Shown here piece by piece: positions 26,720 through 35,516 of a DNA stretch of 51,732 nt (position 1 is the stretch's first letter; each line of letters opens with the position of its first letter). The stretch lies in the NCBI RefSeq assembly GCF_000315625.1, contig NW_005434651.1:92205-143936 (forward strand), in the 5' to 3' direction. Both the position numbers and the translations under genes were made by a program. This stretch comes from Guillardia theta CCMP2712. Lineage: Eukaryota > Protista > Cryptophyta. Below the pieces are notes generated by a model. That model had not been told where the DNA came from, did not search any database, and saw nothing but the letters and a program-made list of their open reading frames with translations.

Positions 26720-27038
26720 ATTTGCCCGTAGATTGATGTCATGATTTAAACCAACTTTGAGTGAAAGGGACAAGAGCTATGTTATGTAAATGCTGCCCCC
26801 CTTGGGACTCTTTTCTTCTGCCTTGTTGCTGCTTACACAACCACTGACATCTCCTTATTGCCGCTGACATGCCATACTGACCGACCCGCTTCTCCTGATC
26901 CCTGCTTTCACACTGCACACCTATATCCCCTCACCCTCCTCAAGTACTACTTGGTATGTGAGTATCTTACACTGTTTGTCATGGTTTTCATTGAATCGCA
27001 TCCTTGTTTCATATCGCACATGTGCACATCATGGAACG

Positions 27039-30000
27039 CTATGAAGAAGCCATCTTCCGCTTCACTCCTCTTCCTGCTCCTCGCTGCAGGTTTTCATGCC
27101 ACTCAGGCACAACATCTGGTTATCATCGAGGTATTAGGAGGAACAACAGGATGAGGACGGGGAGGGCGAGGAAGGGCGGGGGAGAGGCGGAAAGGTGGTG
27201 ATGGTGGGTTGCAGGATGAAAAGTGTCCCAAGGCTGAAGGGAATGAGACGGGGATGGAAAAGCAGGAGAAATGCGAGGAGGTTGGGGGCAAGGGAGCGAG
27301 CAAAGGGAAGGGAGAAGGAAAGAAGAGATTTGAAACTAAGGCGATGCTTTTACCGTGCTGCTCGTGATGGTAGTCGTAGAAAAGTTCGTCTCCTGCCTCC
27401 ACTCGTCGTTTCGCAAAGATGCCAATTCGATGATCCCCCTGCTTCTATATCACAGCAAGGCAGTGGATCAAGACTGACATACCCTGACAAGAAGGATCTT
27501 TGCAAAGCAATTTGGAGAATTGCTGTGATTCGCAAAGCGAGTCTTGTTTCCCTTTCTCATGGCATCCAAGACAGTCTAGCGAGAAAGGGCCATTTCAGCA
27601 GGCGGTCTAGAAGATAGAAACATGTCACCTGATTGTTAAGGTTGAAGATGTAGCCTGTTGAAAGCATCAGTGAAATACTTGCCTTCACTTCACGCGATCC
27701 ACTCACTCGAATTTCTCTTGTCGTAAATCTTTCCTCGCCTATCCGCTTCCTCCTGTGACATCTGCTCTCCCGTGTACTCCTGCCATCAGATTCGGATCAC
27801 ACTCTGGTCCTCGGACCGCGGGGAGCGACTCACTTGAATGAACTCGTTCTTCTCTACTGCATCTCGCACGAACACCCCCCATCCTTACCCCAGCTCGTCA
27901 GTTCCTCACTGCCATCAGAAAGCAGTACCGGCGACGTTGGAGCGGCCCATGAACAAGTGCTGATGTCTTCGAAGCTGCAGGTTCATGTTGGCGCAGAAGA
28001 GCTTGTCCTCATGCTTCTTGCTCCATGAAGATGGCGAGCTTGGTCCCACTCTCCCCGTCCTTACAGCAAGCGTGAGTCCTTGTCAAACGGCCTGCAGTCT
28101 CACTTGTCGTTTGCAACGTTCCCTTGCCCACCAGGGCTGTCGATGATGGGAGTGTTGACTTCTTGTGTGCCCGCAGATCTTGGGCAGTTAGATTCAGTTG
28201 CTGACGTCATCTCGTCGTCATAGCACCTGGGGGGGGACGGAGACCTCTCTGCTACTCTTTTGGTGAAAAGCCGAGGCGGCAGATGGCGATCAAACCTGAC
28301 TCATGCGATCAGAGGCGACAAGGGTCAGACCTTCCGAGGACATGCCTGTACTGCCAGGCTCTCTTGGGGTTGTGCTCGAATTCCGTCCCGTTGTTCTGAG
28401 AGTCGAAGTTCACGTTGTCTTGAAAAGTGACTTCGAAGTTTTGCAGCATTCCTGCCCGACAGGGGATGATTGTCAACGTCAGCAGCGTTGAGGAGGTTAA
28501 GAGAACCAGAGGATCCGCAGGAGCAAACGTCAGGATCGCATTCTCGGAAAGCATCCCAACAGGGACAGCCGACAGAACGGCACTCGGTCTTCCTGCAGCT
28601 GCATCCGGGAAAGCCGTTGGAGCAACCTCCGAGTGGGCCTGAACAAAGCAAATATTACAATGACAAGACGAGGAGAAATATCATCATGGCATAAAGAAGA
28701 GAAGGGCCGTCTAGGAGGACACGAAAAGGAATGCAAAGATTGATTGAGCAGGACGAGAGAAATTGCGAGGAGGGCAGAAGGAGGAAGGCAGAAGGAGGAA
28801 GGCAGAAGGAGCAGTTCACAACTAGACGAAAGCAACCTGCACACGAGCAGAACTTCTCGCAAAAGTTGTTGGCTTGAATGCATTCACACGTAGGACGGAC
28901 ACAAGGTCGTCCGTTGAGAGCACAAGTGCACGGCCGATACTCGTGCTTAACTCCAAGTCGTTCCTGCTTGCGGAGGATCGCTAGAGTGTGCTCCGCATTC
29001 TCCTTCACGTGCTTCCTTTTTGACGTGCCTCTAGATCGCGCTCCGAACGGTCGGTTGTAGTTAGACTGGCTGTGTGCCCCGGAGACATTCAGGAAACCCT
29101 CCTACATCGCATCTCAGCTCCTCACTGGTAGAAGAACTTCCTCTACTCACCCGAAGTGGTTCGAGGACCGCCATCTTCCTTGTCTGGATTTCAGAGGGCC
29201 GTGGAAGCTCCCGTACGTACTCCTCGATGTGCTCCCGCGGCCGTTCTCTCAGCTACCAAGGCAGCAAGTCAGCCAAGTCAGTTTAACACCAGTAAGAATT
29301 TGGAGACCAGCGCTGAGATCTGATCGATGTTTCCTTGGAAGATGCGATTGGCCTTATCGCAGATCTGTCGCTCACTGGGAGTCAGGCCCAACCTTTCTCC
29401 AACGGCTGCTGCTGTCTCCGAGGACAAGGCCTTGACCTTGGTTCAAGGTCAGATCAAATCAACGTAGGCCGCGGTGGCTGGTCTCACCGCGTTTGCCAAG
29501 ACTTGTGCTGGGAGAACCGCTGTGGTTGTCTTGCCGTTCTTGTTGTGCTGGACCGAGGGAGAGAGCTCCTCAGCAACGCTCCCGTCCCTCCCTTTCATAT
29601 CAGCCTCATCCTCTGAGAATTCTCCTTCCATGGCGTTCGACTCGTTGTCACCGTCCCTGTAATGCTTGTCTCCAGCCTTGACCTCGCTCCCGGCATTCTT
29701 CTCTTCGTCCAGATCTGCCTTGTTCTCCGTCCGTGAGATGCTCCCATTTACATCTGACCTCTCCGGCTGGCTGCAGAACCCCTGATCAGTGAAATCACCC
29801 ATCTTTGTTGGCTGGAGATTCTCAGAAGTGATTTCGTTCCCATCTACACTCAACTTTCTCCCGGAGTTTCCACCTTCTGTGTTGCCCTCGACGGACGGGG
29901 AGGGGGACACAGAATGGCCAAACTCAAGATTTGCAAGACCAGAAATGTTCCGAGAGGTATCAATCCCGGACTTCTCTCTCCTCTCCGATGGTACACCAGC

Positions 30001-32262
30001 AGGGCAATCCTGTATCGATGACTGTGGATGATAGATCCCATGAAAATCGCAATCATATTTGAAGCATCTCCTGCAGAACATAGCGGTGTACGTTTCCAGC
30101 CCTCGGCATTGGAGCTATTTGTACAGTGAGCATCAAAATCTCCAGAATGCCCTTCTTACCTTGTCGTCCTGCAGGTATTTCTCCTTCTTCTCTTGCTGCT
30201 GAGCTGCCTCCTTCGATTGCCCTTCATCCTCGAGCAATTTTGCGTGTCGTTCCCTCACATAGGATGTGCTACAAACAATGTCATGTGTAGTGGAGACTCG
30301 ACTGGTTGACCTTCGAGACAGCTTTTCTGCAAGCACCGTGACCAAGAACGGACAGATCTCAAACTTCTGAGTGGCCTCGAAGATGAGTCCATCATGCACT
30401 GGATGGTGACTTGAATACACGTCAGAGAAACTCGAGTTTCATGCACCGCTACTTACTCTTCTTCACGTGTTGCATCGATCTCATACAAGGTAATGTCGAT
30501 GCCTTCTCTATCGTCATCTGAGGGATTGTCAATGAGGTCAGCGTACATGCACATTTCTGAACCTGTAAAATATGGAATAACACGCAGCACGGGATCGTCT
30601 TCCACTGAAGTGTTCTTGATGATAGCTGTCCAAGACATGTGGGGGGGAAGTTCTTCGACCGCATGCACATTTTGCGGAGCGAGTTCAGCGTAATGTTTGG
30701 TTCCTATCGCACCCTGCAGTTGATGATCTCAATACTCCAGCATCGTGTTATGAATGTCTTGCCTGATGAATGATGTAGCTTGACTTGTTTTGAGAGGGAG
30801 TCGGCTTCTTCAGGGGCAAACATCTGCTTGAAAATGATCTGATTTCTGCACCATCACCTTCACTGAAAGCATCGTCACGGAATGGCAAGGAAAACTCATT
30901 GTGAACTACTTGTAAAGAATAACTGCAAATTCCAGTTGTGATACATCCTGTAGATTCCTGTGAGAAGAGCAATTCAAGTATCACATGGCCATTTTACCTC
31001 ATTGTCCACATTGATTTCACACACATACTTCCCGTTACGATACAGCGCAAGATTCGTCCCTTTGTTCACTTCCAGCTCCAGATTGATTCTATCCCCTTGC
31101 TGCAACGAGCAGAAAGGACCAAAACTAAAACAATCCAAAGTCAAGGCAGCGCACAAGAGACATTGAATCATCGATGGGGTCCCATCTCCGTCATATCAAG
31201 AGGATACAGATAATCTCTCACAAGTTCGCTTCATTCTTGACCCAATGGTACGCTTTTGCTGGAGCTTCAAATTTGCCTATCTTCCCAGATTTTCCTTCAA
31301 AGAACCAGCCCATAGAACTGCAGGACAGTCATTTTAGTTTGCAAGACAACATCTCAGATCCCTCACCCGTCTTTTCTCATACAACCAAAATCAATTTCTC
31401 CCGTCGAGTCACGTGCCAAGTTAAATGAAATGTTGTTGCAGATTCCACCCAGGGAGGCCTGTCTGGAACTTCAAACTTGAAGGTGTACGCAAGGGTTGAG
31501 CAGGGCTCAGCAGACCTTCACAGGAACTGTATGTGTCCCATCAACAAGAGCATGCACATGAATCCCGTCAGGCGAGACGCGGATCAGTTGTTTTTCGTCG
31601 CAATCTTCAGAGTCTCCTGCTCCTCCGGAATCGCTCACAGCAGATATACAAACTGCATCCTCTGAAAAAGCTGCTGCGTAGGAACGACGTAATTCTTTCT
31701 CTGTTGAGAGACGAATGAGTATCAGCGATTCAACAATGCCGATGAAGCATCATGGTAAACAACAGGAAGATATGCATCACCGTGACCGCTGAGTCCCCTC
31801 TCGACTTTTGCTGCTTTGCATTCTCGGAGAAGCGAATCTATCTTACTTTTGTTCTCAAACATCCTGAAAACAATCTTACCAAGAGCCTCCAAATGATGAA
31901 CATCGAAGGAAAGGGGGGACAAGGAAGAAAAGACTGAGGACTCACTTCGTCTCAAGCATGGTGACATGCTCAGCATGAAGACGCGCGTGACATTCTTCGA
32001 TGAACTAGGGGAGGTCAGCCATAATGCTCTGAATCTGATCAAGTGATACCTTGTGGATCTCAAATTTCTGCTCATCTGTCACGGTACACACGTTCGACCC
32101 GTTTTCCTCCATCTTCTCCTTTATCCCCAAGTCCGGACTCGGTTCAGAATCTTGTGTCGCCACTTTGATAACGCAACATCATAAAAGAACATGTTATGAA
32201 AGAAGACACATCTCGTGCGTACCGTTCACATTCTCAGTAGAAATTTCCATTTTGTCGTCCAT
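27039..32262 (-). CDS. EZH2: Enhancer of zeste / EZH2-like histone H3K27 methyltransferase (PRC2 catalytic subunit) with inserted SPRY-like domain
   Basis: SAL/SRM: [31 protein letters not shown]: [17 protein letters not shown]: YRPC...CEKFCSC...FPGCSC...CPC...[11 protein letters not shown]: [45 protein letters not shown]...GDELFYDY. Confidence 0.95.
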
Positions 32263-33011
32263 CTATGGATGAAGCCTCAGCTCTTCTTGTCAGGCTCGAT
32301 GTTTCATTCCGCCGTGCTTGGGAAGCACTCACTCCCCTACAACAAGCAACATCAGTACAATCTATCATCAGAACAATCGATCATGCATCATTTGTCATAT
32401 CCCTGTCATTTATGAACTCAGAATCCTTGGTCGTCGTCTCCTAGGTCCGTCGTCTCCTCGTCACCACAACTCATGCTTCGCGCAGTTTGTAGGATCTGAC
32501 CGATCCGACCCGATTTTTGGTTGTCTCTTACCATCAACAATACCCTCATTCTTTCACTTCATGTTGGTCAACCACTATCAAGATGAACTATTCATTTGCC
32601 ATGATTTACCCTGCATCTCTATCTACCTTCTCCTCCTTCATCACCCCATGATGTCTGTAATACTCCAGACCGCATGCGCGCAGTCATGAAAGGACTCCAT
32701 GTTCCCCTCACCTTCCTTGTCCCTGCCTCCCTGTATCCACACCTCATCTTCCTCTCCTTCTCCTCTTCCTCCTTCCATCCCCTGCCTGCTCCCCTCCTCC
32801 CTCTCTTGCGCATCCCCCGCCATTTCTCTGCTACCTTCCCGCCATTTCCCCATCATCCAATGGTAGAGGTATCACCCCTCCAAATACGGAAAATTGGTAT
32901 ATCAAAAGTAGGGTGGGGTGGACCGACGAGATGTCACAATCGAGGCAGATCATGTTCGTGTTGCGTGGAGATGAACACCAGGAGGTTTGCAAACCATCTC
33001 GCGCTTGCAAG

Positions 33012-33083
33012 TGTTGGTGATGTAGATGTGATTGATCTGATGTTGGTAATGTAGATGTGATTGATCTGATGTTGGTGATGTAC
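33012..33083. repeat. 29-bp tandem repeat (~2.5 copies)
   Basis: TGTTGGTGATGTAGATGTGATTGATCTGA repeated with one mismatch. Confidence 0.85.
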
Positions 33084-34231
33084 ATCCGAGTTTCTTCGAT
33101 GTATACCCTGCCATGAACACCGCGGTTCTTGTTTTGCCTTCCCTCGCTGAACGTGATTTCTTCTGCCCTGCTGTTCACTACACCACTCATCGAGACCTCG
33201 ATTATCAAGGCAAGACTGACTAGACCCAAAGACAAACTTTAATTGCTCATATTCACAATCTCAGCAAGACAAGGCAGATTTCTCTGGCGATTTATCCTCC
33301 CTGCAGCATCACAAGGGCTGCGTATCCGCTCTCTGATCGCCCTCTCCCTCATGGTGCAATTCCGTCTCATAATCACCTCAAGGGCGTCACTCTATCGCTG
33401 CTGCTGTCTTCGTCTCTCCTCTCACAAGCTCTCACTCACATCCCTGTCGGCATCGATGCTGATTCCCTAGCATCGAGGAATGAAGCATGAAGCATGGGCG
33501 AGCACCGGCCATGAGGCTCTACTGCCGATCGCTGGTCCTTAGGCCGCTGGCTGCTGTCAAAAGATTGCTTCAACCGGCTGAACAAACTGAACACAACACA
33601 ACCTGGGATGCGGTCCAAGCGGTCCATGCTGGGACCTCCTCTTTTCAATGTCTTTGAAATGGATTCAGCGACACATTCGACCAGCATACACAACTCCCGC
33701 ACAGCAGAAACGGCAAAGACTGCTATGACATCCTCCTCTATACCATCTGTTCATGGTTGGGATGTTGGTTCCAGCTGGTAACGATTCCTCCTCCTTTCCT
33801 CGCCTCGCTCGATGGACGATCTCGGCGTGCAACTTCTCCGTCCCCTCGTTCTTACAGCCGACGGCTCTCCTCGCTCCTGCATGTCATGTTGCAGCCTTCG
33901 TCCTCTTGAGCGATGGTCGCTACCTGTGCGTCAGCTCAGCATGGCAGACGGCAGATATGTAGGAGAGTAGGAGGGGTCCAGGAAGCTTGGATATAGTGGA
34001 GGATTGGGGGTGGGGGTGGATTGGGGACTAAAACTATCTGGTTGCACGGCGTTGCCCGAATACTACCAAAAAAAATCCACAACTTTCCAAAACCAGGTGG
34101 TCACTCGACTTTTACTGGGAGCAGGAGGAGGAGCAGGAGGAGCAGGAGGAGCAGGAGGAGCAGGAGCAGGAGCAAGAGGAGCAGAAGCAGGAGCAAGGGG
34201 AGCAGAAGCAGGAGCACGAGCAGGCGCAGTG

Positions 34232-35485
34232 ATGCACCTTCTCCTCTTCTCCCTTTTTCTCCTCTTGCCGCATGCAGTTTCCTTGACAATAGATGGGAGC
34301 GTGTTGGCAAGAGAGGACGGAATAGGCATGCATGACCCTGCGAGGGCCGACAAGCTTCATTTCCTTGGAAGATTCTGCTTCTCCAACACTGGATCAGGCA
34401 TGGGAACCGTCACGATGACTGCCAACGTGGCGAGAGGAGGAGGCGGAACCAACGTGGTGCTCGTGGACGACACGAGATGGGCAGATCTGTGGAGGCAGAG
34501 GGAGATAATCGGCTGCACGCAAGCGCTGGGTGCCATGTCGGGGCAGGGAGCGTTCCTGTGGACCACGGACCTGCCGGAGGGGAAGAGCGCGAGAGTGCTC
34601 TCAGTAGAGGACAACGTGAGGCCCCATTACTGGTACGCTGCTGCCATGAACTGCAAGGGCCCGATGGACTTCACCTACAGCATCCGGTTCGTCCAACCTG
34701 ACGGCACTCTCCTCTCCTTCGATGACGTGGGTGTGATGACAGCCTACGAGATGTTGCTCGTCCTCCTCCTCGTCCTTCTCTTCCTCCACGGGTTTGCTCA
34801 TAACTGGAATCTACCGTACATGTACGGAGTGACAGTCCTGACCACCATCGTCCTCCTCTCGCTCTCGCTGGCCTGCGTGCTGAAGATCCTCCACATCTTT
34901 CTGATGAGCCAGGATGGGAGGGGTTCGCCGTTCCTGAGTGCAGTCGGGGACCTCTGTCATGCCAGTGCCCAGCTGTTCCTCTGCTCGATTTTCCTGCTGG
35001 TCAGCAACGGCTGGGGTGCCCTGTCTCCGGTCCTTAGGAGGGAGCACAGACGGCACATCCTCCTCCTCCTCCTCCTCTTTGTTGTCTTCCACGTCTACTT
35101 CCTGCTCAACGACTGGTTCTTCCTCGATCACGCCTCAGCCACGTATGCGTACGAGTCTCTTCCTGGCTTCCTGGTGGTGGCGCTGCAAGTTGCGTCTCTT
35201 GCCTTCTTCGGCTTCAGGCTGAGAGAAACGATGAACACGCTGGAGGGCGGCGAGAAGAAGCGCTTCCTGCTCCTCTTCGGCTGCCTCGCCTGCGTCTGGT
35301 TCATCCTAGTCCCAGTCGCCGTCCTCATCGCGACCCTCCTCGACCCTTACGTGAGGGCCAAGAGCGTCGCGATCATGAGGCTAGTCATCGACGGCTCCAC
35401 CGTCACCGTCCTGGTCTGGCTCGTCATGCCCAGCAGGTAACGAGGGAGGAGAGGAGGAGGAGGGGGAGGAGGAGGAGGAGGAGGA

Positions 35486-35516
<31 letters not shown>

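Follow-up and report, generated by a model that had tools for sequence, protein, structure and literature searches.

The closest described counterparts of the protein analysed here are the human and Drosophila enzymes EZH2 and E(z) (PDB 5HYN, 6C23), in which an N-terminal helix, a beta-addition motif (BAM), a SET-activation-loop (SAL) motif, an MCSS motif, a cysteine-rich CXC (pre-SET) domain and the SET domain follow one another. Little is known of PRC2 targeting beyond animals and plants, and the accessory subunits described for this task are mostly lineage-restricted. In solved PRC2 structures, two segments of the N-terminal half of the enzyme wrap around EED. A second system relevant to this work is COMPASS/MLL, the SET-domain methyltransferase complex that is served by the SPRY domain of ASH2L; this domain docks a peptide of RbBP5 and stimulates SET. 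In that system the SPRY domain lies on a separate subunit and the product is H3K4 methylation.

The window analysed here, a stretch of 51,732 nucleotides from the cryptophyte alga Guillardia theta CCMP2712 (contig NW_005434651.1), carries on its minus strand a gene of the E(z)/EZH2 type. Its product shares the SET, CXC, MCSS and SAL elements with the human and Drosophila enzymes, in the common order, but is considerably longer (1130 amino acids, against about 750 in EZH2). Two additions distinguish it: a predicted beta-sandwich of about 160 amino acids between the N-terminal helix and the BAM-like stretch, and a further 105 or so amino acids between CXC and SET. Furthermore, two Pfam families of the animal enzymes, PF11616 and PF18118, were not detected in the G. 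theta protein. Taking the evidence together, we lean towards reading this protein as the E(z)/EZH2 orthologue that serves as the G. theta PRC2 catalytic subunit, with an inserted beta-sandwich of the SPRY/NHR kind in its N-terminal arm. Whereas ASH2L provides its SPRY domain from a separate subunit, the SPRY-like domain would here lie in cis, in an H3K27-type enzyme. The features of the locus are as follows.

27039..32262, minus strand: E(z)/EZH2-type gene, from start to stop codon (29 exons, 1130 amino acids)
31781..32004, minus strand: N-terminal helix region, candidate SBD/EED-binding helix, exons 3-4 (32004-31946, 31863-31781), kept in relatives (alignment A9)
30835..31590, minus strand: predicted SPRY-like beta-sandwich insert, exons 5-10, P0012 residues ~130-290 (transcripts, AlphaFold, relatives)
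31700-31516, 31458-31367, 31317-31222, 31124-30998, 30947-30910 and 30862-30763, minus strand: insert exons 5-10
30714..30762, minus strand: GC-AG intron linking exon 10 (the last of the insert) to exon 11 (BAM-like/SAL), with a GC donor (contig offsets; P0012/P0015)
30563..30713, minus strand: BAM-like strands and SAL motif, exon 11 (alignment to human EZH2)
29488..30114, minus strand: MCSS motif followed by a long low-complexity linker, exon 15 (Pfam Ezh2_MCSS, E=6e-8)
28507..29101, minus strand: CXC (pre-SET) cysteine-rich domain, exons 18-19 (Pfam preSET_CXC, E=1e-6)
27929..28451, minus strand: clade-specific insertion of ~105 amino acids between CXC and SET, exons 20-23 (translated model, residues ~870-975)
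27354..28059, minus strand: SET domain with NHS and Y motifs, exons 23-28 (Pfam SET)

The gene consists of many short exons running from 32262 to 27039 on the minus strand, which were spliced by hand and with a script. The start codon is the ATG at 32262, directly preceded by an in-frame TAG, and the stop codon occupies 27041-27039. Reads and contigs from four runs were placed on positions 26850-32450, and two transcript contigs, X1 (4045 nt) and X2 (3884 nt), each run through the entire gene across 28 joints. Record offsets of the X1 and X2 pieces agree with the exon lengths in the model; differences, of no more than one base, occur where the base beside a junction could be placed on either side; exons 6-10, for example, total 453 nt, exactly as the transcript contigs demand. 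The same joints were found in independent contigs from three studies under two organism labels. Among the 28 introns, 26 are of the GT-AG type and two are GC-AG, namely 28345-28296, which was seen directly in the table of transcript joints, and 30762-30714, which lies between the insert and the BAM-like/SAL exon. A 42-nt in-frame intron (30310-30269, minus strand) is spliced out in the transcript contigs and in the database proteins; left unspliced, it would lengthen the protein by 14 residues and introduce no stop. The donor of exon 4 is the second of two possible sites. The 5' end of the X1 contig lies about 590 nt ahead of the ATG (32263-32450 and beyond, minus strand); either the 5' leader is long or a neighbouring transcript overlaps here.

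The original prediction, made from the genomic letters alone, had placed a SPRY-like domain in the N-terminal regulatory half of an E(z) protein, and had allowed that its exons might prove to belong to a separate upstream gene. They do not: X1 and X2 splice all 28 introns into a single open reading frame, and the spanning contigs, like the database proteins P0012 and P0015, carry the insert exons together with SAL, MCSS, CXC and SET. The insert exons and the E(z) exons are thus one mRNA with one reading frame, and in the spliced model the insert lies upstream of SAL, as had been proposed. Every peptide stretch quoted at the time is present on the minus strand at its predicted place, in real exons of this one mRNA, with one correction: the quoted FRMFENK corresponds to (K)MFENK in the exon, the two further residues having been read from an intron.

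The complete protein also exists in public records, although not under the reference annotation. Our translated model is identical to P0015, an MMETSP transcript ORF of 1130 amino acids, and to the JGI protein P0012 (1126 amino acids) from the second Met onwards. A search with the CXC exon, and after it a word search that used a partial relative as query, led to P0012; its 90% cluster also contains P0015 and XP_005834965.1/EKX47985.1. In the NCBI annotation of G. theta CCMP2712, by contrast, the gene is represented by GUITHDRAFT_43393 (XP_005834965.1), a partial SET fragment of 106 amino acids, and the full E(z) ORF is on record only in the MMETSP and JGI transcript data. Since the reference annotation is such a fragment, the insert was out of reach of surveys based on annotation, which miss an architecture of this kind.

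The assignment of the protein as an E(z)/EZH2-type histone methyltransferase is firm, because it rests on Pfam matches to SET, Ezh2_MCSS and CXC together with a SAL motif that aligns to residues 99-143 of human EZH2. The SET match (PF00856) covers P0012 residues 993-1096 with E=1.1e-22, and the RFANHS and ELFYDY motifs can be read straight from the translated model. The preSET_CXC profile (PF18264) scores 29.6 bits on exon 19 alone (cut-off 23.3) and 22 bits over the full-length sequence. Ezh2_MCSS (PF21358) reaches 32.8 bits against a cut-off of 27, and a search of PDB sequences aligned P0012 451-475 to human EZH2 276-300. In the same way, P0012 321-363 aligned to the end of the BAM and the SAL of human EZH2; the motif is nearly identical, at a weak E-value for the stretch taken by itself (0.8), and it is near-invariant among the marine relatives described below. 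The insertion between CXC and SET contains a conserved block (…W..RYD[RK]…) common to these relatives and has no Pfam match.

At the N-terminus, the helix encoded by exons 3-4 had been likened to the EED-binding region. A conserved amphipathic helix is indeed present in the clade at the expected N-terminal place (alignment A9) and is a candidate for the EED-binding helix; PF11616 (EED-binding) is absent from P0012, and an hhalign comparison of the clade's helix with animal EZH N-termini gave a probability of 0.2%, which is not significant. The insert had also been supposed to stand where other E(z) proteins have their short BAM, and this proved incorrect. A BAM-like stretch is retained after the insert, directly upstream of SAL, so that the insert does not replace the BAM. 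The relatives keep the 35 or so residues that precede SAL, and from their position we infer that these are the BAM counterpart.

The insert itself is about 160 amino acids long and sits between the N-terminal helix and the BAM-like/SAL stretch, flanked by an acidic low-complexity linker of about 40 residues on one side and a basic linker of about 15 residues on the other. A search for orthologues, which had been put forward as a check, recovered the insert in three uncultured marine relatives. These are represented by genomic contigs from marine metagenomes (L001-L009, GC 0.55-0.62; protein clusters P0011, P0009, P0002 and P0001), and their E(z) proteins are 51-60% identical to that of G. theta in conserved parts and 51-54% in the SAL-MCSS region. 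Whereas the G. theta gene has 28 introns, theirs is largely made up of long uninterrupted ORFs of up to 885 amino acids. The metagenome scan yielded five further loci, all genomic, with the gene again in pieces, and the search of representative proteins with the CXC exon found eight, all from this clade or generic E(z). A word search with the insert region matched only the G. theta protein itself. With tblastn and inspection of reading frames, homologous exons were located upstream in three taxa (L001, L004/L007 and L009), collinear with those of G. theta and 28-35% identical to them in the insert (alignment A6/A8); these orthologues share the CXC-SET insertion as well. The description of the insert as lineage-specific therefore applies if a small clade is meant, not G. 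theta alone, as the three marine relatives share it.

Between two of the relatives, dN/dS across three insert exons is 0.22-0.24, and for the SAL region of the same pair it is 0.05. Because its exons are collinear and conserved, and dN/dS is well below 1, we conclude that purifying selection acts on the insert as a protein domain and that the domain arose before G. theta and the marine relatives diverged. Within the domain the relatives carry a conserved Pro-rich loop of 38-41 amino acids (L001:4932-5090, L004:2600-2720, L009:1810-1930) that is absent in G. theta. The loop separates the strands 'GD..I..EL' and '.L..Y.NG' (alignment A6), presumably at the place where the SPRY domain of ASH2L has an insertion of its own.

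The fold of the insert was approached through profiles, predicted structures and feature searches. At E<=10, Pfam gave no match to SPRY, PRY or Neuralized, whether the query was a single exon, the complete insert, one of six slices of it or a piece from the relatives; PF00622, PF07177 and PF13765 likewise had no HMMER match to the insert, and neither did Pfam report a galectin in it. DUF6941, the best Pfam match to the insert pieces at E~0.1, was taken as noise. Against all PDB sequences, phmmer and the family profiles A5 and A8 returned chance matches only, with no SPRY chain among them. Two AlphaFold2 models, built from small and shallow alignments that left out the relatives' short first-strand fragments (A1-A3, A7), which MAFFT had misplaced, are of low confidence (mean pLDDT 47 and 50, pTM 0.48-0.49), and both have the same all-beta pattern of 11 strands. 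When these low-confidence models were submitted to Foldseek, VIA-align and the Atlas shape search, almost only concanavalin-like sandwiches were returned, with no Foldseek match at E<=0.001. The modelled structures make the fold class likely and do not settle the family. All in all, we regard the insert as very probably a folded concanavalin-like sandwich, and as such it is predicted to resemble the two-sheet sandwiches, of similar size, of the SPRY/B30.2 family (PF00622; ASH2L, SPSB, TRIM, RanBPM, RyR) and the Neuralized NHR domain (PF07177), from which it differs in having no HMMER match and in being hosted by an E(z) protein.

In the structural alignments, SPRY/NHR rows average 14% identity against 8.6% for all others (Mann-Whitney p=5e-5 and 1e-4 in the two lists), and the matches closest in identity are 2e63 (20%), 2yyo (16-18%) and 7ccb (16%). 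Every named ESM-Atlas feature neighbour of the insert is SPRY or Neuralized, at scores of 0.89-0.90, although 4-10% of proteins still reach 0.90 after shuffling, and the 152-159 features shared are fewer than the 170 typical of same-family matches. A search with the half-domain of one relative gave no usable Atlas match. By eye, we take the order of conserved positions in the insert to resemble the SPRY consensus, with several consensus positions substituted. At the level of sequence, then, the insert appears closer to SPRY/NHR than to other concanavalin-like families, which is supportive, not decisive. The original assignment to SPRY consequently finds backing in the Atlas neighbours and in residue identity, while the Pfam and PDB searches are blank and the low-confidence models do not separate SPRY from galectin. 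Our own judgement is that the insert probably belongs to the SPRY/NHR superfamily.

What might such a domain do in a Polycomb enzyme? A SPRY-type domain tethered by acidic and basic linkers would hang off the EED-binding arm and could dock a short partner peptide, as SPRY domains generally do. Such a peptide might come from a recruiting or accessory protein, from a histone tail or from a further subunit of PRC2, and docking of this kind may target or tune H3K27 methylation. The most economical reading would be a flexibly tethered peptide-docking module that brings in or senses a partner of PRC2. If E(z) does carry its own docking domain, the partner that it binds would reveal how algal PRC2 is aimed or regulated.

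The main alternative is an intramolecular or structural role, in which the SPRY-like domain works inside the complex, packing on EED, SUZ12 or SET as a structural or allosteric part, for example as a stand-in for a missing accessory subunit. The likely position of the insert, between the two segments that wrap EED, would suit this role, as would the constraint on its sequence (dN/dS of 0.22-0.24), and the second conserved insertion of the clade, beside SET, could offer a partner surface. However, the long low-complexity linkers on its flanks look like those of a loosely tethered module, and the relatives' tolerance of a loop of 38-41 residues points the same way; we consider a role inside the complex unlikely. 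A more far-reaching version of the docking module would have a marine algal clade putting a COMPASS-type SPRY domain, which ASH2L supplies in trans, into the Polycomb enzyme itself. Its ligand there would be an acidic peptide from a WD40 protein or another partner, and by docking it the domain would either switch SET allosterically or recruit PRC2 without accessories of the JARID2/PCL type, a convergent solution in two antagonistic methyltransferase systems. As a complete scenario we rate this as a long shot.

A different family within the same fold class would also change the picture, since an insert that is galectin-like or laminin-G-like would be expected to have another class of ligand (glycan, lipid or nucleic acid). 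Galectins give the top structural scores in both models, with Z of 7-8.3 (best per model 7.9-8.3), values that fall within the tool's 'common' range, at an rmsd of about 3.1 A, and they also provide the best Foldseek rows; the negative Pfam result for SPRY is in keeping with such an assignment. The AlphaFold check proposed with the original prediction thus returned an all-beta sandwich, in 11 strands, but at pLDDT 47-50 and with galectins at the top. Against this, identity in the galectin alignments is just 5-11% and the opening strands of the insert model are left uncovered, whereas SPRY/B30.2/NHR chains, at Z of 5.2-6.0, have 10-20% identity and cover the model from residue 12-14. Moreover, when SPRY and Neuralized are excluded from the Atlas search, the best named neighbour falls to 0.78 and is unrelated, with no galectin or laminin-G cluster; no galectin match came from Pfam either, and glycan binding is not a property one would expect of a chromatin enzyme in the nucleus. 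We therefore regard a galectin-like or laminin-G-like insert as quite improbable. The suspicion that the insert does not truly belong to the protein (because of chimeric transcript assembly or sequence retention, or because it is a fast-evolving disordered spacer), to which the low pLDDT and the lack of an HMMER family match might lend colour, is already close to refuted by the recurrence of the joints across independent contigs, studies and organism labels, the identical MMETSP and JGI proteins, the collinear exons in genomic contigs of three other taxa, a dN/dS well below 1 and the identical 11-strand pattern of the two AlphaFold models.

Returning to an insert of the SPRY/NHR kind, its presence would set this protein apart from the E(z) proteins described so far. 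The original statement that known E(z) proteins lack SPRY agrees with our search: a word search with the SET region listed, as its best-scoring matches, 120 E(z) proteins that all lack PF00622, a set in which the named proteins are all animal and which says nothing on protists. In the literature we found no report of SPRY in any E(z), and it is mentioned neither in a 2022 review of PRC2 evolution nor in a survey of chromatin evolution that includes G. theta. Should a SPRY fold be confirmed, this domain would be the first of its kind that we have found in cis with an H3K27 methyltransferase.

Two of the marine loci have peculiarities of their own. In one relative (L004:526-1689, plus strand; P0106), the ORF that holds the N-terminal helix also contains a homeodomain (PF00046, 25.9 bits, above the cut-off, E=9e-6), which suggests that a DNA-binding domain is fused to E(z) in this organism. 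A regex scan of positions 32263-35500, upstream of the G. theta gene, found no homeodomain motif, and none was seen by eye in the N-terminal ORF of the L001 relative. The added homeodomain hints that the N-terminal arm may be a general landing site for targeting modules. In another locus (L009:100-450), coding-like tandem repeats of the 'TLNPK' type lie upstream, and in the same interval the first insert exon is present in duplicate (…TADGSSAVVQD… twice).
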